Assembly: GCA_964199315.1 (NCBI GenBank)
Contig: OZ116698.1
Span: forward strand, 21,700,001 to 21,764,000
Reading direction: 5' to 3'
From: Orbicella franksi
Taxonomy: Eukaryota
DNA length: 64,000 nucleotides
The first letter of the stretch is position 1, and every line of letters starts with the position of its first letter. Below, piece after piece: positions 33,951-58,100 of the stretch. Made by a program: the position numbers and the translations under genes. The notes beneath the pieces were generated by a model that saw nothing but the letters and a program-made list of their open reading frames with translations, was not told the origin of the DNA and searched no databases.

Positions 33951-36882
33951 GCAAGTCTCACGCGACGTCATAGCTAACACGTGATCACGAACAAGAAAGA
34001 TAGCACGCTTTGTTCTTCAATTAAACGTAAACGCTAGATTAAGGAAATAATCACGTGAAATATCTTTGTACAGGTCTTCCTTTGCACCTGTCCTGCAAAG
34101 TAGCCGTTTGTTTGTAAAAATAACTTATTGTCTGTCACAGCTGTAGCACACGCGGTTTTAACTTTCATTTCATTCAGAAACAAAGCACCTTTGTTTCAAA
34201 TGAAATCAAGGAATAAACTGGTGCATGAACCATAAACAATGGCCTTGAATTTCAGGTTTGAAGGAAAAGGAAACTAGACCACAATGAACAAGGGAAATAA
34301 GAAAAGAGGATTACAAAATTGACACAGAGTTTTGTCAGTAAACGGACTGTATAACTGGGAAACTTTGACAGTGAATAATGCAATGTGAGAGCGCGCGGAA
34401 GTGTGATACTGAATTTACTGACTGATAAGGCGAACTATAAGGCGTATCAGTTGCACCATTATTAAAAACCGCTAAAGTATCACTTTTTGAGATAGTGTCA
34501 TTGCGTCCCACGGCCCTCCGAAAGTGAAATGTTAGTCCTTCCGAGGAAATCTGTAATCCTTATAGGAGCCCAAAGATAACTTCCTTTCTACTTTCCATTG
34601 TCCCAAGATCAAAGCATTAATTTCCCGTCCGATTGCTAGGAATGTTCTTCAATGTTACTTCTACAGAATTTAATAGTAAATCAAGACATCACCTATGATT
34701 TTTTATGATCTTCGCACCGGTTCACCTGATAATACACGTGTATAATGTTGCAAGCTAGGGGAATCGATACCTTGATCAGACTTGTGCTTCAACCCAAGAC
34801 ATGTAGGGCGGAAAGAAAGAGTCTATCTGAATAGGTGACGTCAGCTGAAAAATGACCGATTTATTTGCACAGTTCACTTTCCGACCGGAAAAGACAACAC
34901 CTCTTTTAGTTTCTGACAATAGAGACAATTGGCACTGAAATCAGCAAATGTGTTTGTCGAATAAGGAACAGTAAATCAAACCTTTAACTGCTTATCTCCA
35001 AGGGAGGGTGTTGAAAAGATATTTTCAAATCGGGATGAACGTCTCGCGTTCAGATTCCTCGCATGTTCTGAAAACACGACTTGCTCCAGTCACTTGTTCA
35101 GGAAATAGTCCTCCGGACGCTGTATAGCTCTGTTTGATTTTTTTCAAAGAATTCTCAACGGCACGATCTCAGAGTAGCTCGCGAACACCTGCCAACAGTT
35201 TGCAGGCTCTTGATAACAAACAGCGTGCGATGAAAATATCATCCGGCTCATTTACACTTTGTTGCTTCAGGATGAACTAAAGTTTTACGCAACTGCCCGC
35301 CCTTCGGTGTCTGGTGTACAGTAAACTCTGCCTGTGCCTGAAATAAATGTATCCCTCTGTTTTGTTGAAGTAGTTATTTGGTCAAAGTTGTCTTCTGAAA
35401 AGCGAAGAAATCGGATTATAAGGAAATTCAATTATAAAGTGATCTAAAACTTAAATGCATTGTGCGTTATCCCAGCGGAAGAACTTCCCGCCCTTTTCCA
35501 GTCTCGCTCCCATGACCTTTTCCCTGACTTAGGGGGGCAGCCATGGGAGCAGGTTTGCCCCTTTTCCCTACTCCTGTCCTCTTCTCCGAGAAGGAAACAT
35601 CATAACACTACGCTCCACAAAATATTTAGCATCGAATTCCATCGTCTCTCACAAATAACATTATTGGAATGGTTATGCAACTACTGGTCTGCTTCTTCAC
35701 CGTGTATAATTTTAGAGCATGCTGAAATTAAAACCTCCACGTTGTCGTAATCTTTCATCTTTTCGTGTATGGAAAGCTTAAATCTATCAAAGGGGAACAG
35801 TAGCGGTGAGCTATAACAGAGCCGTTTTTAAGTCATTAATGTGGCCTAGAGTTTAAGAATAGCCTATTTTATTGTCACTACCACAAGTTGCAAGACACAC
35901 TTTTGTTGTCTTCGAGTCTATCGACCAATCAGCTGCAAGACCAAGACTTTCCCGCGCTTCCAGAGTACGTAAAGTTGTACATATCATGCTTGGAGCTCTG
36001 ATTGGTGAATTCAACAGACCGAGGTTCATTCATTAGACGTAGTGCGAGAGGTTTCAAGTCACTGCAAAACGGCTATAACATGTCATAAGAGATTTTGGTT
36101 TCCTACGACACTCAGCCACGTACACTTTCTAAGATACGTGACTAACAAGTTGATGTCTGCTGAGAAATCAGCGTCAACTGCAAGTATCTCAACAGTTTTG
36201 AGTGTTCTGCTCCGGTGCCTTTTATTTGAAATCGTTGAAGCGTTTTTAGTCATCTTCAATCAGTTGACAGAAACAATCACAATTCAGCATGAGGGAAAAC
36301 GCATAAAGTATTTGCGTGTAAAATTCAGGCAAATGAAAGACTCTCTTTAGAAAGGCCTGTAAAGTTCTTTAATCAAGTTTCGCTTGTGAAGTGATTCTGT
36401 GTTCATGTCGTACACACAAACATGTACAAGATGCTCGAGAATGTCATAACAAGTCAACAACGCAAAGTTAACAAACCCCTGTCAGGTTACTTTTTATAGA
36501 GTTGCGGGTCGTCAGTCAATAACATGACAGTATTGCATGGGTCGCGCCCATAAGATATGGACCAATATTTACCTGTGCACGCCCAACAGAAAAACGTGCA
36601 CCGTAAAATACTTCTAACCAATTCGGATTAAACCTGGAAACTACATACTTACAGGGAAGCTCATTTCGCTACTTTCCTTGGGGTAATTTACGTCAACAAC
36701 AAAACAAAACGTCGCTTGGATTCCAACACATTTGCATAGATTTAAAGTAGCCCAGTTCCGGTTTGTTGCGCACCAGTAACCTCCTCTCATGCGGCAAACA
36801 TCATTAATTCTCAACAAAGCCAATTATGCTTTCATCGCGCAATAAAGGATCCTTCGACGGTGAGTTATAGAAGACCTTGTTT

Positions 36883-37112
36883 CACGCGATCCACCACTCA
36901 GCTCATAACCCTGCTGTTCAGCCGGTGTTTTGACAAAGAAATCGCCATATTTCGAACAACACGCGCTGTTTGGTTGCACGTGCTGCACCGTTCAAGCGCT
37001 AACTCGCCGTCTGATTGGCTACGGACCAGATGGTCCGCACAATAGAGCACGAGAAAAGAAGTGTGTGGGAAGGTGCAAAATGCATTTTTCCCACGGGTTT
37101 TAACGCCACGAG
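36883..37112. promoter_or_regulatory. CSL/Su(H) paired site (SPS) with Hes-type N/E-boxes
   Basis: TGTGGGAA 37064-37071, 16-bp spacer, TTCCCACG 37088-37095. CACGAG 37048-37053 and 37107-37112; CACGCG 36883-36888 and 36960-36965; CACGTG 36977-36982; CCAAT (reverse) 37014-37018. Confidence 0.7.
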
Positions 37113-38925
37113 GCCACTCGAACCGTCAATATTTACAAACTCATTCATTTTCTTTTGTTTCGATGTTCCTTCATAAACATGCATACCAAGATTCTGATTT
37201 GACACCAAGATTTATGCGATTTTTTGACGTAATTTTTCCTCCCTGTTTCAACGCCCAGTATCTACGAAAGGAACTAATTACGTCGCAAGCCCTTCTAAAC
37301 GAACTTCCTTAACAACAAATGGCCACAAACCATATTCACGCTAATTGAGAATTGTAGCGTGCTCCCTAAGGCCGACAATAAACCTGTTATTGTCTGCTAG
37401 GTTTCTCAAATTGGGCGAATGTCCAAATACAGAGCCACAAGCGTAAACAATTGTTCAGATTTTTGTTTCATTCCGCACAATTAAATTGTTAGTGGAATCA
37501 TACAAATACACTATTCTCGTGAAACACAACAAGAAAAACACACCTGTATGTTTTCTAATGCAATTCAAGGTTTTATTTCCATCCCAAAATACTCTGTTAT
37601 CGTTTATAACACAGTTACTTAATGAATTCCAGGTAAAAGTTATAAAAATAATATACGGGATTAGTACAGAAGCAACCCATCGGTCATGACAATGGCTAAA
37701 ACCGACTTGAAAACCCTTATACTTGTGATAGGAACTCAAAATACCTCGAGTATATTGTCGAAAACGAGTGGCGAAACGGTGGGGCATAAATGTTCTTCAA
37801 TGTACAAAAAATGTATTTACAGTCTTAAGATTTCCTAATTACATCTTAAAAATATATTAAACTTTTCTATAGCTCTATGTGTTTAGTTCCAACATGAAAT
37901 TCAATTATTCGTCTATAAATCAATTGCAATTCTTTTTTTTTTTTTAAAAAGGCAGCTACCTTTCAACCTCATCATATATGTGTGCTTTGTTAGTTTAGGA
38001 GCAGTATTGACTCACTGCATTTGCATTCCTCTAAAATACCACAACAGCTTATTATCTCGCCGGAAACACTGATCAAAGCTGTGTTCATCAGTAGATTTGT
38101 TGTCCGTTATTGTGAAATCAGTTTTAACGTCTCCTGTAAAAACTGAACCCGTTTGACACAACAGGCCTGAACAGGGTTGTGAGATAAATTGTAAAACGTT
38201 GCCCCCTGGTTACTGCGTTGATTAAAATAATTTAGAATTAGACGTGTCCGTTTGTTTTTCTCCGCCCCTGAACTCGCCACAAAAAAAAAAAATTCCGCGG
38301 TGTACGAACAGTTGTAAGTAATAACTATAACATTAAAATACAGTAGTATTGATAAATAACTCGACGGGACTAATAACATTATTGTATACAATAAACACGG
38401 CAGTTTCACCAAACGAACTTTTTTCATTGTAACACAATTTTACCTCTTAGAGAAAGTTAACTACAACAGTTAGTGGAGTTAACCATTAAACATATTAAAT
38501 TTTTTTGTTACAAAAAAAAAAACAATTTTACAGCAGCATCGCACATAAGCGCGCATGAAATAGTCACTGCCTTTAGACAACGGCCAAAATTCACACAACG
38601 CTACACATCAGAAGGATAACTTTTTAACAAAAGTGGAAGCGAAAAAAATGTGCTACTTAGTTTGTGCGACTTGAGACTGATGTTTGGATGGTCACGCAAG
38701 GTTTCTGCCGAAGTGTTGTGTGACAGTCCAAAGGGGAGACCTATAGTTTGTGACTACTCGTCACTGCAAGTAAAAGTTTATTAATTAATACGCTTTGGGG
38801 TCCTGGCTCCACTAACAAATGAAAACAGGGTGAAACAACGGAGTGTAACATCTATTGTGGCGACTCTCATCTGGACACTGGACAATGAAGTCATGGTAAA
38901 AACAAGTAAAGTACACATACACTGA

Positions 38926-41485
38926 CTAGCACGAAGACGATGACGATGATGAAGACCACTGCCCCGGCGAATCAGGGGAAGGGGTTGGGAACGAAACAAA
39001 CTTCTGAGGTGACGACTCGTAGCCGTTGACAAACGAGCGAGCTTGTGGCTGCGAAGGGAGTCTTTCTCCGCCCGCATAAACAAGTTGGTGGTTATGTAAC
39101 TGAAATTGTTGATGGTACATCGAATAATCGCCATTTTGGTAGTCTTTTCTGGGCGGCATCAAGTTTCCTCCTCCACCGCCGCAGCCGGGAAACATGTTGG
39201 AGTTCGTAATAGCCTGATACGAGGCCAGTTGCGAAGGCGTCGTATTAGGAGCCTTCTGCGCAGAGTGACAAGTTCTTCCATTAAACACTAGAGGCCGAGA
39301 GTCAGGGTGGTGCAAACCGCCATTGTGCAGATCCGGCGTGCTATGCACAGAGTAAAGTCTCTGACCCTCTAAGGGGTCCACCACACGCCTCACAGGCGGT
39401 GCTGCATTAGGTACGTACATACAGTCTGAAGTAGTGGGCACAATGTGGTCCACAACGGTCAAAGGCCCTATTGTCGAGCTGGGAGGGAACCCGCACATGG
39501 ACATATCCGCAGGATCGTTAAAAGGATCTATGTCGTCCAGCGGCAAATCGTCCCACCCGATCTGGACTTCCTCCAAGCCCGCCAAGTCGTCCGGCGACAA
39601 TATTTCTAATGGTTCTAATGGTGAAGGCGGCTGTGTATCAAGCGAATTTGGAGCCTGAAGCGGCGACAAGGTAGTCGAATCCGCGGGCGAAATGCCCGTG
39701 CTCCCGAGAGGAGAAAGTCCGTTTGTGATCGGTACACAATTTGGCGAAAACGCCTGTTGTTGTCCGGTAGCACAAGAAGTCACCAAATTAGGTGGCGAGA
39801 GCGTTGTCACAGTGCTCATGGCAGGGTACACTTCCTCATCGGGGCGTGCCTTCTTCCGCTTCCGTTTAGCATTATTGTTATTATTATTACTTCCTGAAGC
39901 AGTCGACCTGGGTCGTGTGCCAGGTGCTCTGTTGACAGTCGTCTTGGGACGCGCCGGTTGGAAATGAGCCACCAATGAAGGTGCGCCGCCATTGTGAATT
40001 TCAACCGCTGGTGGAGATGTTGCAGGAGGAGAAGCCATACCTGCGAGTGGAGATTTTTGCCCTTCGGGGGGTGAGGTGGGGGCTGGCACAGCCTTAGGAG
40101 AGTTACAGCCTAATGACCAATCCGTGAGCAATTCCACAATGTCGTGATGATGCCTCTGTTTTGCGATATCTTCCGGTGTCATATCCATAGTATCCGCGGC
40201 TTTGCGGTTAGCATAGTTCACTAACAGATGTCGTACGGTCTGGATGCTTCCCTCCCGACACCCAAGGAACAGCGGTGTTTGACCCTATAAGAGATAACAA
40301 AACGGAATTAGAATAGAAGGGGAAAATCCGTCTCGTTATAAGCGACTCACTAGCCGGGGTTAATATGATTAAGTTATTTTTTAACTAACCTTTTCATCTT
40401 GAGCATCCTTCTTGGCGCCATTCCGCAGCAGTTCCTTGGTCACTTCCAAGCTGTTCACGGAGGCAGCCCAATGCAGAGCGGTTTTTCCTATCAAGACACA
40501 AATCAACGGTTTTAGAGACCGCGGCGAAAGCTCAAATCAATCTCCAAGATATCAGAAACTACAGATCACACACACACCTTGATTATCCGCACTGTTGACC
40601 TTTACGCCGGCTTTGATGAGGTGACGCACGAGATCGGGCAAGTCATGCCTTGCAGCCAGGATAAGCGGTGTGGTACCATCGTCCATTCTAGCCTCAAGAT
40701 CCGTGGCACGATTTCGTAGCAAGATCTTAACGACAAAAGAAACAACACCGTTTAGAGACGGAATGAAAAATGTCGAGAATAAAGCGTTTTCTGCGTCGTG
40801 AACAGCACTGAACTTACCAGGTACATATCTACTTGAAGAACATGCAATACTAATTCTTATTTATCAGAACATGTCAATTTTTGTTTACCTAGCACACGTG
40901 GGATATCACTTCATATTTACCTGAAACACTCCCTGAGCATCAGCTCCAATAGCTAAGTGTAAAGGTGTGCGGTTGAGTCGGTCCCGTGAGTTAGCATCAG
41001 CTCCATAATCCAGAAGACGTTTAGCAACATCAGCTCTGGAATGTCGAGCAGCAAGATGAAGCGGTGTCTCATCTTGGTCCGTCTTAGATCCATAGCTTGC
41101 CCCAAGAGACAGCAGATCCGAGACCATCGCTCCTCCGCTGTCGTCGCTGTCTTTGTCGTCATCCAGGCTGCTGCCATCACCGTACCCACCGCGACACGAA
41201 GCCAAGTGCAAGGCGGTCATTCCACCGGGGCCTCTGGCATCCACCTCTATGTTTGATGCTCCTCGCTCGCCACTGCCCTCCTGAGGAGGGGTCAGAGCCA
41301 GCGATGGGTTTCGTACAGTCACATCCGCTGCTTGCTTGTGGAGGCTGGTCCATTTACGCGGGTCTTCTCCGTTGTCCAGCTTGACGCGTTTGGATTCTCT
41401 GGGAGGGGTGAGGTCTGATCGGCTGCTCTCGCCATCCGCACAAGCACCTTCTTCGTCAATTTCCGAGGAACTTTTGCTCATTGAT
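38926..41485 (-). CDS. NOTCH: Notch exons 16-19: ankyrin repeats, NLS (KRKRKK), PEST
   Basis: [51 protein letters not shown]; C-terminus [20 protein letters not shown]. Confidence 0.95.
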
Positions 41486-44400
41486 CTGGGAGAAAAGAGA
41501 ATGATGAAATCAGCCAGAATTCTTCCTTCCTTAAACCTCGTGTTCATGACTTTTGTAGACGTCAAGATGCCACAAGGACAAAAAGTTTACCTCATGGACA
41601 CTTCCTGGCCGACGGGTTCACGCCTCGTGGAAGACTGTCGTCGAGGTCGATGTCTTGGAAAACCTTCAGGTACCCACAGTTTGGCGTACACCCTCTTGGC
41701 ACCAGCCAACACTCCAACAATAAACAGTGGAATACCCACACACAGCATAGCAATGTAAAGTGGCGACAGAGGGGGAAGATCAGGGGGTGGTTCTTTGGGG
41801 GTCGGAGGTTCGTCGTCAACTGAAAAAAACCAAATTCATCAGATTGATGTCAATGGTTAAAGTAACTGTCTACTCTCATGGGCTCGTTGCGTAACGAGCA
41901 ATGCACGACATTGCGTGACGTCCGTGACGAACGGTCGTGCGCCTTGTCGATAGTATTTGATGCGTTTCTGCTCTTACACTTCTGGAACGCAAATGGAAAA
42001 TAAACAGAATCAGACTGACTTGCACTGCTTCAAGAGAAGAAATGACAACTATTACCTCTAACTTGATACACGGGGTAAGGTAGGTCTAACTTGTTGGAGG
42101 ACTGTAATGCACCAAGGTAGCGAGCTCCCTGAAAGCAAACCCAACAAGTTTCAGTTAATCCCGGCAATTAAGCTAGCAGTAACAACTCAACAGACACCTA
42201 ACAATCAACATATTTGAAGGTGAACTTACATCGCTCGCTTTGTAGATACACGTGTGTCCTGAGCATCCTCTCTGGTCGAGATCCACGTGAACTTCCGTTC
42301 TTTAAGTAAAAACCAACAGAGAAGGCAGTCAATTCACTGCTCGCTAAGGTTACATACTAGAATTTCATTTACAAAACCATCCCGTACAGCATAATAAACT
42401 GCACCACATGGAAATACTGTTCACTTACAGGCTTCTATTTGAATGGTCACACTAGTATTCCATCCCCAGACTTTAACGTTAAATAAAACCACATTGTACA
42501 GCATAATAAACCGTAACACATGAAATTACTGCGAAACAGATTTCACTGGAACAATATCCACAGGTTTCTCTCTTGACTGTGAAAGAGCTAAATCGCACTG
42601 GCACAGAACACATTGACTGAGTTATTACAGAACACTTACCCTTTCGTGGACCCTTCCGCTGCCCGTCTGACAACGTAATGAGTCAGCTTCAGGATAGCTT
42701 GTCGGCGTGAGCGCTGTTTCAGGGCCTCAGTAGGAGAAGGAATAGTCACGGAGTAGATCATTTGCTCGTTATCCTTTTTCTTGATAAATGCAATGGTTTC
42801 CAACACTGCAGAAAGTTCTCTCATAAATATTCTGGAACCATTCCTAAAAGTGTCTGGTGTTACCAACAGCACAAGTACAAGCGTTCCTTCGCCCTGGGAC
42901 ATTTAAGAAAGACATATTAATTTACCACTGCCACAAAAAGCTGCTGATGTGTACTGTTACTATACTAATGTATTATAAACAGTCGAAATCAATTTCACCC
43001 ACCAATTTAGGACTCCCTGTTTCACAGTCTAAACCATCCTTCAAGCAGGCTTCATTGTTGCAGACTGAATCACACACTGCATTTTCAAAGCGGGCAGCAC
43101 AATAGTCGTTATTGCTACGATTCATATAAAAACAATTAAAGTTAGACATTGAGCATCAGTGCGACAAACAGAGTTCGTCGAAGAGTCAAGGTAAACAGTC
43201 TATGCCCCCCTTAAGAACTGAAGATGGCAAAGGGAGAGGAGAGAGAAATGGGAATTAGTAACTCTTTGGGGACACAAGTTCTTAATTAAAAAATACAAGA
43301 GACAGACACAGAAAGGGTTACAAAGTGATTTGTGTATCATACCTGCATTCTTTTTTAGGAGGGCTGCAATCAAAACCGTCAAAAAGACACTCTACTTTGT
43401 TGCAATGTTTGTCACATTGACCATTTTTGAACACTTCGTAACAGAATTTTCCAGATTCTGTCAGTGCAGAGCAATTTTTCCATGGTTCAATTCCAAGGGA
43501 ACAGGAAGTGCCATCCCAGTTACAAGAATGAATGTTGCAGTTTGGCTACATTCGAAATAAAGGAAACATGCATGAAAGAGTCAGAATCCACAATAAAATA
43601 ACCTTAGTAATCATGGCTGCACTTCGTTTTTTGATACATTCACATTTTGAAAACTATTCAGCATGTGTGACATTTTTATCCTTTATCCTCACATAAACTA
43701 CACACACTTCAGCACAATACACTACTGCTGGAGAAAAAGTAAAAACAACAAGGTACATGTAGGTAGTATCTGCTATTTTAGTATGATGGCTCATATAGCC
43801 ATAGCCATAGCCACAGCCATAGCCATAGCCATAGTAAGTTTTTCTTGGACAAACCTGTCCAAGGGGGAAAGGTACAATGAGGTTAACCCTATGTAAAGCA
43901 CCACCCCGTGAGACAAGGCCAGACCACACCACTGGGAACTACGTACTCTACTCTTTTCGACAAGCGTGTGGGTCCTTTAACGCCTCCTGCTAACCATGTA
44001 ACACTGAAGATGCAGGAGACGGGGCCTACGGTTAATAGTCCTTATCCGAGAAGACTTGAACGTCTAATCAATTGCAGATGTAATTACAAAGGCAGTGCAT
44101 TCTCCTCAGTTATTTTAAGACCCTAAGTGTTAGTCCGACCTTCCGTATAGCAGACTGGCGCTCTACCAACTGGGCTAGCCAGTGCTTAACTACAGCTTTT
44201 GCAACAAGAGACAACCTGAATGGGGACGTCTAGGGTTAACCCATCACGTTTGTTTGTTGATGTCCATTTCCATAAGTGAGCAGAGATATGCTGCACTCCT
44301 GACAGCCTAATAATTGCATGTTATCTTAATCATGACAATAATTATGGCCTTTTGTCATCAAACAAATGAAACAACAAAAAAACACATCAACTTACATTGC

Positions 44401-47400
44401 ATTTCCCTCCATCAAACTTCTTTGCACAGTCATCACGGGGGCACTTTGCTTCTTGTTCACAGTTTGTACCGCTGAAATTGTCTAAAAGCAGGAACAATTT
44501 CATGATTAAAATACTATTCACACATAATGTCCTTAAAATAACAACAAAATTTGAAATAAACACAAGGGCAAGAACAAACTCATTCCCGAGTTTCTATGAA
44601 TAATCTTAATGCCGTTGACAAACTTCTGTTCCCTGTCAAACAATAGCTCAGTTATAATCAAGCCTGATCTTTCACCCAGATTCACGTTAACAAATTCATA
44701 CACAAGTGTTAATTTATATGCTGTGTACTTAACTGCCTTGAGGCAATTGATCCAGACAATCACTTCCTCTAACCAAACATAATATATCTGCTTAACATGG
44801 CATTAATTGCGTTTGGCCCTGCTTTTCCACTTTTCCACTCAGGGAATGTAATTAAGTCCTATCTAAGAATACAACATTACAACAGTGACCTTGGGACCAG
44901 TACTTAGATGAGAGGTTAACCAGCCATGACAAAGCAAGCAGTGCTTTCAGCTAAATTGTTTCCCTTGTTCAAAAGAGTTTAGACGTCAGAAATTCGTTTT
45001 AATATTCCCATACTGACGACACAACACTACAGAATCCATGTGGCGTCTAGCAAGCTGGTTGCTATTTTTGAGCAACCAAGCAAAACTGCCCAAATATATA
45101 TTAGAGACGCTACACTTACATGTACCTCGGAGAACTAAGTAATTGACATGACATTTCTTCAGACATAACTTGACTGAGAGAAAAACTGAGCATGAAAAAT
45201 AAAGTTTTGTTCAAAGAGTAAAATAAAGTTCACATGTTTACCTGGACATTTACATCTGTAGTGACCCACCATGTCTTCACATGTACCACCATGCATGCAA
45301 GGATTGCTTTTGCACTCATCCACGTCCTGTTCACAGTTTATTCCGGTGTATCCGATAGGACACTTACATGTATATGTACCAAATCCATCCTCACAAGTTG
45401 CTCCATTCTGGCAAGGTGTGGACAGACAGTCATCCTGGTTCCACTCACACATTCGACCATTAACTCCATGCATACAAGAGCACGAGAAACTACCGTTGAC
45501 ATGTGTCAGACAGGTGCCACTATTCAGGCAAGGATAATCTGAACACGAGGAGACTGCACGCTCACAGTTTAATCCTGAAAATCCTTTCTGGCAAAGGCAA
45601 GTATATTTGCTGGCACCATCTTTGCATTCTGCTCCATTCTGGCAGGGATTTGACAGACACTCGTTTATGTTAAAGTCACAGTTCTTGCCCAGAAATCCAG
45701 GCCTACACATGCAGCGATAATCATTATCAGGCAGTGAATAACATTTGTCAGTGCCTAGAGGTGAACAAGGGTTAGAAGCACATTCGTCAATGTCCACTTC
45801 GCAGCGCAATCCTGAATATCCCGCTCTGCACAGACAGGAGAAACTTTCCAGACCATCTTGGCAAGTACCACCATTGAAGCAAGCATTATCTGGACAATCA
45901 TTAGGATTACTTTTGCATGTATTACCAACATATCCCACAGGACATGAACAGAAAAAATCGTCAACTAGATCAGTACATGATCCACCATTCTCGCATGGGC
46001 TCGAAGCACAGTTATCAACATTTATTGCACAGTTGTCACCAACAAAGCCTTTCAAACAGCTGCAAGAGTAGTTTGACACTCCATCGATGCAACTGGCACC
46101 ATTTTTACAAGGTCCACTGGTGCAATCATTGATGTTGATTTCACAATAGCTTCCTGTAAAGCCAGGGGCACATGAACAGGACTGCATATTCTGGTAATCA
46201 TCAATACATGTTCCCCCATTCAAACACACATCGCTTCTTGAATTTCTGGCCTGAGCACAGGTGATATTCTCGACATCACAAATAACGCCTTTGAATCCAG
46301 TCAGGCAGTCACACTGAAAATCAGTCCCAGTTTGCTTACACGTACCACCATTTTTACATGGGGAGTTCTGACACCAATTGATTACATTTTCACAATTCGT
46401 TCCAGTGTAGCCAGGTTTACAGTAGCAGCGGTATGAAGCAATTTCGTCGACACAAGTGGCTTCGTTCTGACAAGGTGATGATCTGCACTCATCGATGTGC
46501 TGTTCACACCTTCGTCCAGAGAAGCCAGGTGCACATTCACAAAAGAAATTATTCTCTCTGTCGACACATGTTGATCCTTGTAGACAGGGGCTACAAAAGA
46601 AAAAGAGAAAGCATATAAACTTAGTCAAATTCATGAAATAAACTCTTATGATAATCATTCTTATTCTTATTATAGTAGCATTTAACAAGATTGTAACTTG
46701 AGAGTGCAGTGCAATGTAAAAGCAATTGCCTGAAAACTAATGAGCACTACTTTCACATACCACAGTTTCTTTTTTCTAGGTTTTTTTTTACTTTTACATG
46801 TATAACTGGGCACTGTTTGGAGTGAGAGGGTGAAATAAACTAGTGAAATCCTTAAGCATCTGAATTTGGGTTTGTTCTACCACCCACCCCACCCAACCCT
46901 CTGGGGGGTGGGGTCTTGAAATTGTGCCCTTTACTTTTCCCATCCACTTGGTGCAATGTCTCACTATTACACGAAACAACTTATAGTACAGTACACTGTG
47001 GTCATGGAGAATGTTTAAGTGACAAAAACATCAGGTACTAATTGAACCACAGTCTTTTTTAAGCAAATCATGCAAAGAAATAAATTACAAAACTCACCTG
47101 GATTTACAATCGTCAATATTGATTTCACAGGTAGTACCCCTGAAACCAGCGTAGCAATCACAAATGTACCTATTGACCCCATCTCTGCACTGACCATTAA
47201 AGCAAGGGTTTGCAGCACATTCATCAATATTAACCTCACACAACTGTCCACCATACCCAGGCATGCATTTACATGAGTAGCTATATTGTTGTGAGACACA
47301 AGATGCACCATTTTTGCACTGGTTTCCAAGGCAACTGTCAATTATGGTCTCACAGCTTCTACCTATCATATTGAAGAAGAGAAAGGAGAAAAAACTCTCA

Positions 47401-50400
47401 AGGATGCTGCAACATGTTCCTAGGGAGTCCACTATTCAAACTCCTGGTGGTCTAGTACTGTAAAATGCACTCTTCCTCATTACTTGTAGGAAGTCTACAT
47501 GTACATTTTAATCACTTCATGAAATCACAAAGAAAAGCATTAACTTATGATATCCTGAACACCACAAAGAGACAAACCTGTGAAACCCGACTGACATTGG
47601 CAGTGATACTGAGCAACACCATCTGTACAAGTTCCCCCATTTCGGCAAGGTTGTGATGCACACTCGTCGTAGTTACTATCACAGTGGGGGCCATCAAAAC
47701 CTGGATGGCACTTACATTCGTAAGCATCAAGTTTATCATTACATGTCCCACCATTCTTGCAAGTAACTCCTATGCAGTCATCAACATTGTGTTCACATCT
47801 TGTACCTTTAAGCAGAATGGAAGTTACTCATGACATAAAGAAACAGTAACATCTGCACTTGTCCAAACAGTTCTCAAACTCATTAGTACCAGTAATTCAT
47901 CAAATTGAAACAAAGGAAATCATAATGAAGATGATGTTTCATTATCTGATCTCAATTAGCATGGATTTTTAGGATTATATAACTCCAGTTTTTCCTTAAT
48001 TTAAGTTTTGACTGAGAAGATATATCAGACACTCAAGACAATGTTTTAGCACATTTCAATACATCTTGAAGTTCATCTTAAGTACTTTGCTGTCTCTCTT
48101 CTCAGTGTTAGGAAATGCAGTAAAACACAGGCTCTCATGTTTGCTATAGTAGGTCAATCATCATGCAATGTAAATGAACACTTCAGAATTCAGAACTGGC
48201 CATGATAATGATTGCAGAAAAAGATCAATTACTTTCTAGACATAAATAATTGTCTTGTGTAAATAACTTTGTCTGAAGACACCTAGTTTCAAAGAATGTG
48301 GAATATTGGAAAAGCCAAACTTTGCAAGGTATTACAGGAGTCATTACTTTATGGCATGAGCTCTAGGTCAGAGTTAAGGCATAATACTCAAAGACAATAC
48401 ACCAAACAAAACTCTTCGACAGTAATTTACAGGTACTTTCCTCATAGGATATCGAAACATTTATTTAGTTTTGTAGTATATACCATAAAATTAATTCTAT
48501 GAAATGAAAGATGCCTCCTCATTAATGAGTTGCATTTTCTGTTTTCTTTGCTCATGCTAATGCGGTAAGGGGCAGTTTAACATTGACCACCCCTGAAAAA
48601 TAATGCACATAAAGGTCAATTGTCAGGCAACTTACCACTTGTGCCTTTAGGACATCTGCACTGAAACCCATTTTGTTTATTCTCGCAGGTTCCGCCAAAC
48701 ATACATGGATTGCTGGAACATTCGTCAAAATCTTCATCACAGTTCTTTCCAATGTAACCAGGGGCACAGATGCAGGAGTAGCTATTGATGCCATCAACAC
48801 AAGTTCCATAATGCTGACAAGGGAATGACATGCAGTCATCTATGTCTGTCTCGCACACTTTACCAGTGAAGCCACTGGCACAAGAGCAAGTATAAGAGGC
48901 AAGGCCATCAGAGCATGTAGCACCGTTCTGACAAGGATTTGGGTTTGCACACTCATCAATATTTATCTCACAGTTAGTTCCACTGAAGCCAGATTTACAC
49001 TTGCACCTGTAACTATTCAATTCATTAACACATTGTCCTTCGTTTTTACAAGGGTTGCTGTTGCATTCATTAATGTCCACATTACATGTTTTGCCTGTCC
49101 ACCCAGCTAGACAAATGCATGTAAATTCACTGACGTAATCCAGGCACTGAGCGCCGTTCTTGCATGGGTTGGATGCACACTCATTAATGGGCAAGTCGCA
49201 CCTCTCACCTGTAACAACATCACACAAAACCTGTTTACTACATTCCCATTGTTTGCATATTTTTGTTGTATAGCTTGAGGAGCCAAAAATGCCAGGACTA
49301 GTCCTTTCTCTTGTAACATACATATACAAGTCAGTGTTATACTTTTCCCCTTAAAGAAAACACACCAACCAACAAAATCGAAAAAAAAAATGACTGAGGA
49401 AAGTGCCTCAGCTTGCCCTGCTATAGGCCATACTGGCTATTGGCCTGCATGTGGGACCTAATATGATAATTACCTGTGTAACCTGGTACACACTGACATA
49501 CAAATGATCCAGGTGTGTTGACACATGTGCCACCATGGTGACACGGTGAAAGACTACTAATCATGCACTCATCGATGTCAGCACTGCAATTTTTCCCAGT
49601 CCATCCTTTTGGGCAGTGACAATTATATCGTCCAAAGGGATCTGTCAAACATGTTGCAGCTCCATAACATGGATTGGCGTAACACTGATCAATAGACTGG
49701 CACAAAGGACCTGCATAACAAAATGTTGTTTGACATGTGAGTAAGAAACTTGAACAAGTATCTGTCATTTCATTATCAAAGCAAAGCCCTACCACTTTAG
49801 GTGGCAAGTACTCTATTTAACTGATTTGTTTTGTCTATAAAAATGTAACTACGAGTACAGTAAGTACATAGGTTGTTGTTGTTGTTGTTGTTGTTGTCAA
49901 TGGTCGTGCTGTGCAGTTACATGTACATGTGTATGTTACCGCATGATATAAGAAAATGTTTCTACAATTTTGGTGACTTTTATTAACTAGTCCAATCCAA
50001 GTAAATAAATACAATACATAGTTAGGCATTAGAAAGTCCAAAAGTCACTCTAGATCTTCTTACCTGTCCATCCTGGTGGACAGAGGCAATCATATTTGCC
50101 AACTCTATCCACACAAGTGCCACCACTTAGACATGGGGGGCTCCCATCTGCTTGAGTAACACAGTCATTCTTGTTGATGGAACAATCAAATCCTTCCCAA
50201 CCAGAAATACAACGGCAAAAATAGCCTCCAAAAACGTCTGTACAAGTTGCTCCATTATGGCATGGATTTGATAGCACTAGACACTCGTCAACATCTGTTT
50301 CACATGTGGCCCCCGTGAAATTTGCAGGACAACTGTTAATGAAAGACAATAAATTATGACACACATGTTTGCAAATACCATATTTCCAAGTTGAATATTA

Positions 50401-54929: not shown

Positions 54930-55110
54930 ATGCACAGTATTCCCACGAACGACCGGAGGACTGAGCGATAGAGTTTCACCACACTGAACTCCCTAGCGGG
55001 CTTCCCACTGATTAATTTGCATATGCATTTTACTACGCGTCGCGCTCTTTCCTTTGTGGTCCAAGTGGCCAATCACAGAACGCGGTCGATGATTGACCAA
55101 TGGCACGGTA
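54930..55110 (-). promoter_or_regulatory. Notch proximal promoter candidate (CSL site, POU octamer, two CCAAT boxes)
   Basis: TTCCCACG 54940-54947, ATTTGCAT 55015-55022, CCAAT 55069-55073 and 55097-55101, in CpG-enriched DNA 90-250 bp upstream of the ATG. Confidence 0.6.
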
Positions 55111-58100
55111 TTTTCTTTGATTTCTGCATTAGTGCCGTGCTCAGGGTCGCTTAATTGTCCCTACTGCCTAATTATCACATCAACTGGTGTAATTTGTGCA
55201 GCCAAGTGTACCTACACTTCCATCCTTTTACACATCACAAGGGATTACTTGACGTGGGAAAAAATCCGAGTTGAAGCTCAAGGACATGGGTCATTCCATA
55301 TGCAAGCAAATTTCGACACAAGTCCTTAGACACATTTTCGCCTCCAGTCGGTCTAGTCATAAGAAGCTTGGCGTGGTACAGATTACATTCGGGGTAATAA
55401 ACAACATATTTCATGTCAAGACAAGCTCGAAGTGCATGCGCACTGCTCTCTATGTGCTAACTCCAAAAGTCAACTTTTCAGTACTCTTCTATTTTCACTA
55501 AGTCCCCTTGTCCTTAGTAAAAAACCAAATCCATTTTATCTAGAGGAGGTTTCTCTCCATTCTACGTTTGTTTTGAGTCGGCTTAATAGGCTTCGCCGTC
55601 GTTTTCTCTTTTTGTCAAGGGTCTTTGACAGGGTTTCCATAGCAACTGAAGCTACATCCAAGACGGGAAATTTTCCCACGGCTTCCAGATAAGATATGAA
55701 CGCACAAACGGAAAGTAATCTATTGTCGTGAACTCGACAAAGTCGTCACCCCGGAAAGCTGAAGGAAAAAAAAAAAATCCATTCTCTGCATTCTGTTAGA
55801 TATAAACTGTGCACGTTTTCCAGGAATACATTTACAGTTTCCTGTGGAAATATTAAGTTGAAACGAAAACTGATCATTTTAAAATGAGAGACGGGACATT
55901 ATGATGTTGCCCGCACTTCCTTCTACGGACTACTTAATTTGCTATACAAAAGTGGCGGCGTTCATGTCTAGTTAGCGCACCGTAAGAAGCATAGCCAAAA
56001 CTAAACATGTCCAAAGTTGAGAGGTTTCAAAATACTGTAAAAGTATCGTGACAGTGTGAATTTCAAACTTTCAGTGCACCTTTTTCCGGTTTTATATTTC
56101 TTAGATCATTAAGAATTTGTTGTGAATTGCGAGATTAATGCCAACTTAACTCCTTTGGCCTCAGCACAGTGCTGCATATACAATTTCGCTCCAACACGTG
56201 AAGTTTAGCGCTAAACTGAAAAGATTGGGTCGAAGACGAACAACATCAACACAGATAATCTCTAGAGCAAAAAAAGAAATCAATCGAGCAAAAACAACAT
56301 GAAGGCTACACAAAGCAAACACTGACCCAACCGATATTTCAATGTCCCGAACAATATTGACATAAAGATTTTCACAAGTTAATAAAATTGAATTATGCTG
56401 CGAAGTCGAACAATAAACTTCGGACAAAACCGCGTTGGCTTGAGCTCTATTGTACTTTAGGTTAATTGAATGGCCTTCAAAAATGACAAGATGTGATGAA
56501 TTGACAGACCTCAGATGACGTACGGATTTCACATGCTCAAAACGCAACAAAAAGTTCCGAGCCTTTAAACAAGTACAATACCACTTTAGCTCTTTCAGTA
56601 ACGTTTTTAGCCCATTTGATTTAAAAGAAGATCACTATCACAACTCCTTTCAGTAGATGCGCATATTTTTATATTATGTATCAAAACTATTGATACTGGT
56701 TCATCATACTTCTATGCAACTTTTTGGACGCGTTGTTCTTGAAACATTTTTACGTTATTTATCGTTGTAGCGATAATCACAAGTCTTTTATAGGTTATAT
56801 TGGCGATGCAGCGTGACCGCAAATTTCAATTTGTCTTTTGCTTGCCTTGTCAGAAAAGTCAATACTGCAAAATAAAAGCAATTTCTTGATCTCAATTTAG
56901 TCACGTGATTCAAATCATATGACTTCTTGCCACGTGTCGAAAGAATGTCACCTCCGAAAGGGTGTTACGGGTGTCATAATTGTCAAACAGTACGCGTTTT
57001 GGATTCCTCACTGAAAAAACCATGTGCTTTTGAATTTTCCTTCCGAATCCACCCGCCAAAACAACACTGAAGAACTCCTTTATTTTTTCGGGTGACTTAT
57101 CACCGAATGCTCAACACACTTGGAACACAGCCGAGGGCTACAAGATGGCGTTAACAAGTTCAGGCAGGACTTCAAATTAAAAACGGCTGCAGTTTACCGT
57201 CCATAGTGGCTAAAGATGAAATGTACTGTACTTAATTATCAGAACCAATAAATCTTTTGTTGCACTTTGTGTTACGGACTAATTTTCTTCAGTCCCAAAT
57301 ATACTTGTTCATTGTTTTAGTTTATTGGCGTAATGTGATGCCATTTTGCATTGAGAAATTGGTTCTTCTTACGCCTTCTCAACACCAGTTTCATTACTGT
57401 CCTCGATTATGCATTCTCAATTCAAAGTTTATGATAGTCTCGCCCGAGGGAACGGAATTCGAAATTAACGAAGAAAGCAGAGGAAGGGTATGTTTTCGAA
57501 ATCTATTCTTCTCAATTTGTATCGCTGTAGCGGCTGGTACAGCCGTTTTCTAAAATGTTTCCATAAGAGAAGAAAAGCTTAAAAGTTCCTTTGAAGACAC
57601 ACAAAAAGGTGTTTCGACAAGCGGCATCGTGCGCTTAACAATGGAACACATGATCAATTGAAAGGACACTCGATCGCGACCAATAGGAGCGCACCATGTT
57701 CCTTCCATAAACAAGAGTTTCGTTATCTCCAGGGAGTACAAGTGTTTCTCCTGCTGGCTGATGAAGGCCAGTGGAATTAACTTAACAATGTAGAATGATA
57801 AACACGTTGTATCCATGGCCGGCTAAATGGCAAAAGCCAAAAGTGTACAAATGACCATCAGGTGAAATAACGTTAAACAATAAACCCGCTCATACAGTAC
57901 GCGCGTAAAGATTGAAAACTGCCGACTCGCTGTCGACAGGCTGCTTCAAATAAGGTACAAGCTGCTGCACGCCTTTTTTTTTTTCTTAAGGAAGAGCATA
58001 AGCCTCCAAGAAGAGGATTTTAAAAGCGCATGTAAATTGCACTTTTTTAGTGGTGTAAGAAGCACTATCAGAGGAACCATTTGTGACCTCCATCAGGATG

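Follow-up and report, generated by a model that had tools for sequence, protein, structure and literature searches.

Locus organization

The window, meaning the whole stretch of 64,000 nucleotides of Orbicella franksi DNA that was analysed, carries the Notch gene on its minus strand. EGF-repeat reading frames lie at 45159-50364 and ankyrin exons at 40381-41565, and the splice joints 40283/40389 and 40486/40577 are supported by RNA reads. Coverage of the Notch 3' UTR ends at about 37550 in three poly(A) RNA-seq libraries, 15-25 nt after the AATAAA signal (Table 1).

About 470 nt beyond the Notch poly(A) site, outside the mature polyadenylated mRNA, a pattern search of the window sequence located the head-to-head paired site TGTGGGAA-N16-TTCCCACG at 37064-37095. 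Left of this element lie 36 kb of poorly characterised window DNA. Both half-sites match the CSL consensus YGTGRGAA, and the 16-nt spacer falls inside the definition of the Su(H) paired site (SPS), namely two consensus CSL sites placed head-to-head and 15-17 bp apart (PMC7561103). Every sequence-level property of a paired CSL site is present. This agrees with the first-pass annotation, which had described a pair with a 16-nt spacer and both halves at consensus about 1.8 kb downstream of Notch; the pair begins 1,831 nt beyond the stop codon. The accompanying motifs that it had listed, CACGAG boxes 10-11 bp to either side and two CACGCG words, a CACGTG and a CCAAT box nearby, were likewise recovered. 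The pair lies in a conserved non-coding core, and the extended conserved region around it additionally holds homeobox-like sites and a second GTAAATATTG at 36563-36572.

Table 1. Coordinates of features at the Notch locus and in the paired-site element
Feature	Position	Strand	Remarks
Extended conserved non-coding region	36440-37215	.	Nearer relatives L014, L020, L015
CTATAAAAAG (TATA box)	36490-36499	-	Invariant among nearer relatives
CACGCG, two copies	36883-36888 and 36960-36965		Window sequence
CACGTG E-box (class B)	36977-36982	.	Window sequence
Conserved non-coding core	37011-37184	.	blastn, tblastx
CCAAT box, plus-strand ATTGG	37014-37018	-	Notch-sense GCCAATCAG; window sequence
Palindrome GGACCAGATGGTCC, 14 bp	37023-37036	.	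Encloses CAGATG (proneural-type) E-box, 37027-37032
N-box-like CACGAG	37048-37053	+	10 nt before pair
CSL/Su(H) half-site A, TGTGGGAA	37064-37071	+	Notch-sense reading: distal TTCCCACA
Spacer GGTGCAAAATGCATTT, 16 nt	37072-37087	.	Window sequence
CSL/Su(H) half-site B, CGTGGGAA	37088-37095	-	Same 8-mer clustered at own Hes promoters
N-box-like CACGAG	37107-37112	+	11 nt after pair
GTAAATATTGAC, forkhead-like or TATA-like	37125-37136	-	Kept offset to pair
Notch poly(A) signal AATAAA	37572-37577	-	RNA-seq coverage end
Last coding exon of Notch, last ankyrin repeat to C-terminus	38926-40283	-	Stop codon 38926-38928
Three further CGTGGGAA words, Notch 5' end	54940-55680		54940 minus, 55253 plus, 55673 minus

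Frequency of paired sites

The strict pair YGTGGGAA-N15-17-TTCCCACR occurs twice in the 497-Mb genome, against once for a reversed control, and a relaxed form occurs 8 times against 5. Genome-wide enrichment of either form was rejected on these counts, so that frequency alone does no better than chance, whereas conservation at orthologous loci does. Within the 64-kb window there is no second such pair, and none of 100 dinucleotide shuffles contained one. Loose YGTGRGAA words are not enriched in the window (11 against 8.8 expected); of the strict word CGTGGGAA there are four copies where 0.85 would be expected, a count reached by none of 100 shuffles, and all four sit at the two ends of Notch, one in the pair and three at the 5' end. 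An origin from a multicopy repeat, which had been named beforehand as grounds for dismissing the site, was checked: a 501-bp region occurs just once in the 497-Mb assembly, and derivation from a repeat or transposon was rejected for that reason.

The second strict pair of the genome, on contig 13 at position 18621446, lies upstream of a forkhead gene (Pfam E = 1.6e-40) at a distance of 3.4 kb. A third CGTGGGAA occurs there at about 400 bp, and GTAAATATTTATAC stands 37 nt off the pair. A general composite class of GTAAATATT plus CSL was rejected, with 11 genome-wide occurrences against 9 and no enrichment, and the forkhead/TATA-like motif beside the contig 13 pair may therefore be a coincidence.

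Conservation among lineages

Orthologues were found with the 431-residue product of the last Notch exon, and their loci were then fetched. Named homologues of this product come from Montipora foliosa and Pocillopora verrucosa. Lack of conservation had also been named beforehand as grounds for dismissing the site, but both half-sites and their spacing are conserved: a head-to-head GTGGGAA pair with a spacer of 15-17 nt stands 1.6-2.35 kb after the Notch stop in eight other lineages. The identity of their Notch C-terminus to that of the window is 84% in L020, 79% in L014, 73% in L015, 69% in L016 and L017, which group with Montipora, 62% in L018, 39% (BLASTP) or 36% (tblastn) in L023, and 33% in L026. 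The 7-mer core of half-site A is identical in all eight, half-site B is invariant in nine of nine compared loci including P. verrucosa, and none of the 14 half-site core positions has changed among the retained pairs of the compared lineages. The spacer measures 16 nt in five other lineages, 15 in L016 and L017 and 17 in L023; its sequence is almost invariant in scleractinian-grade loci and unrelated in L023 and L026.

The core is better conserved than the adjoining coding exon, with blastn identities of 83.9% over 174 nt to L016 and 83.3% over 126 nt to L018, against 69.0% and 66.4% for the exon, and the remaining intergenic DNA cannot be aligned to either locus by blastn. Matches of the core in tblastx occur in all six frames; its conservation is therefore non-coding, and a coding potential of the element was rejected. 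The sequence outside the core is not retained in the deep lineages. A conserved block at the Notch poly(A) site (37558-37654) is present in all loci, and the element keeps a distance of about 0.4-0.6 kb from it in the lineages where the block could be aligned.

Losses were also observed. Behind a minus-strand Notch copy of P. verrucosa (L022) the block is kept, and a 28-bp deletion has taken out half-site A together with one N-box, the counterpart of that at 37048. In L019 the element is absent within 6 kb; this gene has 79% identity to that of L016, stems from the same sample and is either its paralogue or closely related to it. Behind the poly(A) block of L013 there is a large insertion, which carries a DNA_pol_B_2-like gene and places the element, if present, beyond the fetched flank.

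The two most divergent loci were placed with a tree from about 105 residues of the ankyrin domain (one ankyrin exon), in which bilaterian Notch was represented by fish, ostracod and one other sequence. Montipora foliosa is joined by L016 with a support of 99/99. The stony-coral cluster does not include L023 and L026; a long branch (100/99) sets off bilaterian Notch, and both loci stand on its coral side. Both also have the corals' acidic insert in the ankyrin-exon sequence. Because of this placement and the coral-type insert, L023 and L026 are taken as non-bilaterian, probably from other anthozoans.

With these data a functionless chance match, which we hold to be hardly credible, can be weighed. 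It would suit the genome count of 2 against 1, and a scan of thousands of windows would yield one such site; against it, eight other lineages have the same pair in the same position, and no other non-coding block of the locus is as well conserved as the one that contains it. By our own rough estimate a pair of this kind would turn up in 6 kb with a chance of about 1e-5 per locus. As far as sequence comparison can tell, conservation has already refuted this explanation.

Notch is the sole conserved neighbour of the element, and conserved linkage to Notch and to no other gene was found across the compared loci. This bears on the suggestion, in our view improbable, that the element acts at long range as an enhancer of some other gene and stands beside Notch by happenstance. 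Enhancers can skip genes, and the 36 kb to the left of the element would leave room for such a target. Against this, the left 36.9 kb of the window share no coding similarity with the 8-10 kb downstream flanks of L022, L023 and L026, nor do the downstream flanks of L023 and L026 share any with each other; 14 neighbouring reading frames contain no Pfam domain, and the distance to the Notch poly(A) block is kept wherever the block could be aligned.

A 7-bp inverted repeat in a weakly transcribed zone just past a poly(A) site, with a spacer unusually conserved among stony corals, could also serve an agent other than CSL, such as another TGGGAA-binding factor, a boundary or termination roadblock, or an RNA or DNA hairpin. 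We judge this very improbable, as both arms match the full 8-mer of this coral's own Hes promoters and the spacing stays within the 15-17 bp SPS range. There are furthermore no compensatory changes at the 14 stem positions in nine lineages, and the spacer is wholly replaced in L023 and L026; fixed arms around a replaced spacer are the pattern of protein-DNA recognition and not that of base pairing in a hairpin. A structured RNA was rejected on the same lack of compensatory changes in the arms and on the absence of Rfam matches above threshold; the only Rfam hit is a sub-threshold snoRNA-like match at 36789-36840 (21 bits against a threshold of 52 bits).

Partner motifs and spacing

The motifs found to be both present and conserved are the paired site, the proneural-type E-box, the N-boxes and the TATA-like motif. 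Read in Notch sense, the invariant parts follow the order GTAAATATTGAC, paired site, CATCTG(G), CACGTG. The first GTGGGAA follows GTAAATATTGAC at 42 nt, measured from G to G, and this distance is 42-43 nt in every lineage; the 12-mer is identical in L026 and reads GTAAATATTTAC in L023. CATCTGG is invariant in the seven sequences of the first alignment, in L022 and in L026, and CATCTG, the CAGATG E-box on the other strand, follows the pair after 31 nt in the window and after 30 nt in L026. CACGTG is retained in five of the seven first-alignment sequences and in L026, at a distance from CATCTG of 45 nt in the window and 44 nt in L026.

The remaining boxes are less widely kept. CACGAG at 37048 occurs in the seven first-alignment sequences (as CACGAT in L015) and is absent in L023 and L026, while its partner at 37107 is invariant in scleractinian-grade loci and L022, changed to CACGAT in L026 and missing from L023. 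The CCAAT box is retained in scleractinian-grade loci and P. verrucosa and lost in L023 and L026. Of the two CACGCG words, the one at 36883 survives only in the two nearest loci, and not even the nearest loci have the one at 36960.

These losses touch the proposal of the first-pass annotation that Hes repressors act through the boxes. The CACGAG boxes are real and kept in scleractinian-grade loci but absent as CACGAG in L023 and L026, and the CACGCG words, although present in the window, are not retained beyond close relatives; of the two parts of the idea, Hes repression is therefore less well supported than the paired site.

CSL usage in this coral

Eight Hairy_orange matches genome-wide mark Hes/Hey genes. 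In all five of the Hes promoters that were examined in detail, the first 0.7 kb or so upstream contains 3-4 YGTGRGAA words, most of them in the strict form CGTGGGAA. A unit of stereotyped build, CCAAT-N12-TTCCCACG, recurs in these promoters, and the TATA box stands 10-17 nt beyond the proximal site. The paired arrangement (15-17 bp, head-to-head) occurs in none of this coral's Hes promoters. As pairs are neither enriched in the genome nor present at Hes promoters, paired-site logic is not shown to be general in this coral.

The LAG1 DNA-binding domain (PF09271) of CSL is encoded on contig 10. Human NOTCH1 complexes dimerise through the ankyrin contacts R1985, K1946 and E1950 (PMC7561103). Residue numbers were transferred to the coral protein by means of alignment ranges to chain 2f8x_K and the human sequence. 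The coral lysine in KRLLD and the arginine in RNRATD are presumably the counterparts of K1946 and R1985, with aspartate in place of E1950. The KRLLD and RNRATD motifs are also found in L016, L018, L023 and L026 and in the fish and ostracod Notch sequences.

Transcription around the element

The depth over 36967-37360 is zero in all three poly(A) libraries. In the stranded library X21 only the Notch strand is represented, with no plus-strand RNA over 34800-40700. Two poly(A) libraries have about one read pair each at 36376-36966 (depth 0.5-1.0), and a trace with depth up to 0.9 lies beside the poly(A) site at 37361-37557. One metatranscriptome contig extends to 36936 and a second, of depth 7, spans 36018-36912, where the coding exon has a depth of 116. 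Between 0.47 and 0.93 of the sampled words of 36000-37540 are contained in 14 RNA runs from 13 studies. The zone 36000-37540 would on this basis be transcribed weakly or present as DNA carry-over; transcription running through the poly(A) site would explain the signal most simply.

A promoter of the Hes/E(spl) type drives an adjacent bHLH-Orange gene, and the window contains none: HLH (PF00010) and Hairy_orange (PF07527) have no match in contig 1 at 21.70-21.764 Mb, so that the element does not qualify as a Hes promoter. A hidden Hes gene was rejected, as whole-genome searches with both domains placed none in the window. Beside the element there is also no reading frame common to the window, L014, L020 and L015. 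A poly(A) signal of a mini-transcript behind the TATA box at 36490-36499 was rejected because the AATAAA words are not aligned between species.

The element could nevertheless be the Notch-responsive promoter of an unannotated, low-abundance and probably non-coding transcript rather than an enhancer of Notch, which we regard as unlikely without being negligible. Starts would be expected, with the same limited likelihood, on the plus strand at about 37160, convergent with Notch, on the minus strand at about 36950, or from the TATA box at 36490-36499. The plus-strand order of CCAAT, E-box, N-box, pair, N-box and a TATA-like AATATTTAC 31 nt after the pair recalls the Hes1 and E(spl) promoters, and the coral's own Hes promoters combine CCAAT-N12-TTCCCACG with a TATA box at short distance. 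Rigid spacing across deep lineages, the conservation in nearer species of about 80 nt past the TATA-like motif, and the invariant CTATAAAAAG 600 nt further on in Notch-sense direction would fit a promoter as well, as would the sparse RNA at 36376-36966, the depth-7 contig and the 14 RNA runs. What speaks against it is, to begin with, the RNA itself: X21 has no plus-strand signal over 34800-40700, the three poly(A) libraries are empty at 36967-37360 and reveal no transcript start at the element, and the low signal falls with distance from Notch, as read-through or genomic DNA carry-over would. Nor is there a conserved reading frame, an Rfam match above threshold or a bHLH/Orange domain in the window to represent the product, and the sequence beyond the core is not kept in the deep lineages.

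Proposed function and significance

Judged by the sequence comparison, the element is functional by the standard of purifying selection, and it is very probably a conserved regulatory element with predicted binding of CSL. The fuller reading, which we consider probable with some reserve, is that of a Notch-responsive, dimer-dependent paired site at the 3' end of Notch that feeds back on Notch. That CSL occupies the sites, that dimers bind cooperatively, that the element depends on Notch and which gene it controls are inferences. In the absence of signalling CSL would occupy both sites; once Notch is cleaved, two CSL-NICD-Mastermind complexes would assemble on the pair and touch through their ankyrin domains, so that the response would be cooperative and switch-like. 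Where and when this happens would be set by factors bound to GTAAATATTGAC, the CAGATG bHLH box and CACGTG at their fixed spacing, and in stony corals the two CACGAG boxes and the CCAAT box may act as sites for additional factors. The target would be Notch itself: with Notch as the sole conserved neighbour and three CGTGGGAA at its 5' end, Notch is the most likely target, and a 3' autoregulatory enhancer of Notch is the most likely identity of the element.

Several observations count against this feedback reading, namely the lack of genome-wide enrichment of paired sites and of pairs at the Hes promoters, the locus L019 without the element, the deletion of one half-site in P. verrucosa and the aspartate in place of E1950. 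A core promoter would likewise account for the conserved sequence of the spacer and for the TATA-like motif at 31 nt.

Paired CSL sites and the dimerisation of Notch complexes are known from flies and vertebrates, and their age is unsettled. The element suggests that paired-site control by Notch is older than the bilaterian animals. It may even be, though this falls a little short of probable, that the common ancestor of cnidarians and bilaterians had the dimer-dependent paired-site mode together with a fixed bHLH E-box partner, wired to Notch itself. If so, the element would be the oldest traceable paired site and a Notch-feedback switch that can be aligned across stony corals, with its motif layout kept in at least two more distant non-bilaterian lineages.

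The element is a small (about 170 bp), sequence-defined object for testing the age of paired sites, and comes with natural variants: spacers of 15, 16 and 17 bp, the Pocillopora half-site deletion, and lineages with or without the N-boxes and CCAAT. It suggests that Notch signalling may feed back directly on coral Notch from the 5' as well as the 3' end of the gene, which would be relevant to lateral inhibition and the formation of boundaries in animals that lack a bilaterian nervous system. To our knowledge, non-coding sequence that can be aligned, or recognised by motifs at fixed spacing, across such distant cnidarians is rare, and because of this rarity the element should be useful as a marker of regulatory grammar.

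Comparison with known systems

Among cnidarians, the Hydra genes HyHes, HyAlx and Sp5 respond to DAPT and have RBPJ motifs in their regulatory DNA; such motifs are enriched within 5 kb upstream, and the HyHes promoter is activated by NICD (bioRxiv 10.1101/2021.02.09.430419). Like these genes, as far as described in the part of that report considered here, the coral locus is a case of cnidarian regulatory DNA with CSL/RBPJ motifs; the same part deals with promoter motif enrichment and makes no mention of paired architecture or of the Notch locus. A search of the open literature found no paper that joins paired sites with cnidarians or with Nematostella.

The coral's own Hes promoters (L004-L012) use the same vocabulary as the element, with CGTGGGAA, CCAAT, CACGTG, GTAAATA-like and N-box/class C words, but differ from it in having 3-4 dispersed monomer sites 100-500 bp apart.

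Notch autoregulation via CSL/LAG-1 sites is known for lin-12 and glp-1 of C. elegans and for mammalian NOTCH1 and NOTCH3. The coral resembles these in having CSL sites at the receptor locus, with three CGTGGGAA 5' and the pair 3'; the lin-12, glp-1, NOTCH1 and NOTCH3 cases involve 5' or intronic monomer sites, and we know of no conserved 3' paired site described at a Notch receptor gene.

Compared with the SPS of Drosophila E(spl) and of vertebrate HES1, HES5 and NRARP, the coral element differs in lying about 0.47 kb past the Notch poly(A) site instead of upstream of a bHLH-Orange gene, in having a cnidarian host, in the additional conservation of the spacer sequence and of the GTAAATATTGAC partner, and in that its cooperative binding is a prediction from sequence. 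It shares with them two YGTGRGAA sites set head-to-head at 15-17 bp, the adjacent N-box-like CACGAG words and a proneural-type E-box close by. A paired site combined with a proneural E-box is the 'SPS + A' pattern of the fly literature.

Paired CSL sites and Notch 3' ends

Genome-wide, the only strict paired CSL site (YGTGGGAA-N15-17-TTCCCACR) besides the pair at the Notch 3' end lies on contig 13, 3.4 kb upstream of a forkhead-domain gene; another copy of CGTGGGAA, the third at this site, occurs roughly 400 bp from the pair, and GTAAATATTTATAC is 37 nt from it. This site is a candidate for a second dimer-type Notch target.

Beyond the Notch 3' pair, two further words are conserved in the nearer relatives L014, L020 and L015, namely CTATAAAAAG and the second GTAAATATTG, which is found in the splice-donor-like context CAGGTAAATATTGG. 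Read in the Notch sense, both are located approximately 520-600 nt past the pair, and conservation continues for about 70 nt after them. No reading frame common to the window and the three relatives follows.

In one close relative (L013) a large insertion, which shifts away whatever sequence is downstream, encodes a 900-residue frame with a faint match to DNA_pol_B_2 and looks Polinton- or Maverick-like. The Pocillopora verrucosa locus contains a partial Notch 3' end, in which ankyrin exons are accompanied by a C-terminal exon that is present twice; a second Notch copy has its 3' flank tail-to-tail with this end. In the conserved block of the locus a 28-bp deletion takes out an N-box together with one CSL half-site, which may reflect a true lineage-specific loss or else an assembly artefact. 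Two Notch 3' ends from one sample (ERZ25067889; coverage 34x for L016 and 31x for L019) share 79% protein identity, and the paired site is present in L016 and missing from the 6 kb searched in L019; the two ends either are paralogues or come from two acroporid-like species.

Coordinates of features in O. franksi and other corals (contigs are those of the O. franksi assembly)
Feature	Location	Strand	Remarks
Strict paired CSL site	contig 13, 18621446-18621476 (L003 1501-1531)		spacer 15 nt
Forkhead-domain gene	L024 5136-6584	minus	near contig 13 pair
CTATAAAAAG	window 36490-36499	minus	invariant; conserved in L014, L020, L015
Second GTAAATATTG	window 36563-36572	minus	conserved in L014, L020, L015
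Insertion	L013 8792-13227		directly after Notch poly(A) block
P. verrucosa locus (L022)	GCA_036669915.2, CM071752.1, 3861500-3884356
CSL (LAG1) DNA-binding domain, N-terminal part	contig 10, 10.323, 12.172 and 12.369 Mb
HLH-domain cluster	contig 7, 25.64-26.02 Mb		at least 12 matches
Hes/Hey loci (L004-L009, L012)	contig 10, 19.895-19.900 and 25.888 Mb; contig 11, 14.00-14.10 Mb
CGTGGGAA x3, Notch 5' end	window 54940-55680

CSL and HLH gene families

Because three separate loci on contig 10 match the N-terminal part of the LAG1 domain, the genome sequence suggests several CSL-like gene copies in this coral. The HLH matches on contig 7 have open frames roughly 150 residues long, some of which contain in-frame stops, and the cluster suggests that a small bHLH gene has expanded in tandem in a lineage-specific manner.

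Hes/Hey promoters and the Notch 5' end

The Hes/Hey genes of this coral share a stereotyped promoter layout: a span of about 0.7 kb contains three to four YGTGRGAA words, most of them CGTGGGAA, and CCAAT-N12-TTCCCACG is the recurring unit. A distal site is followed after about 100-125 nt by CACGTG, and a TATA box occurs 10-17 nt past the proximal site. The L006 and L009 promoters, both on contig 11, are near-identical copies. Within the 64-kb window CGTGGGAA occurs in 4 copies versus 0.85 expected, all belonging to the 3' pair and the three words at the Notch 5' end, the layout of which resembles that of the Hes promoter clusters.
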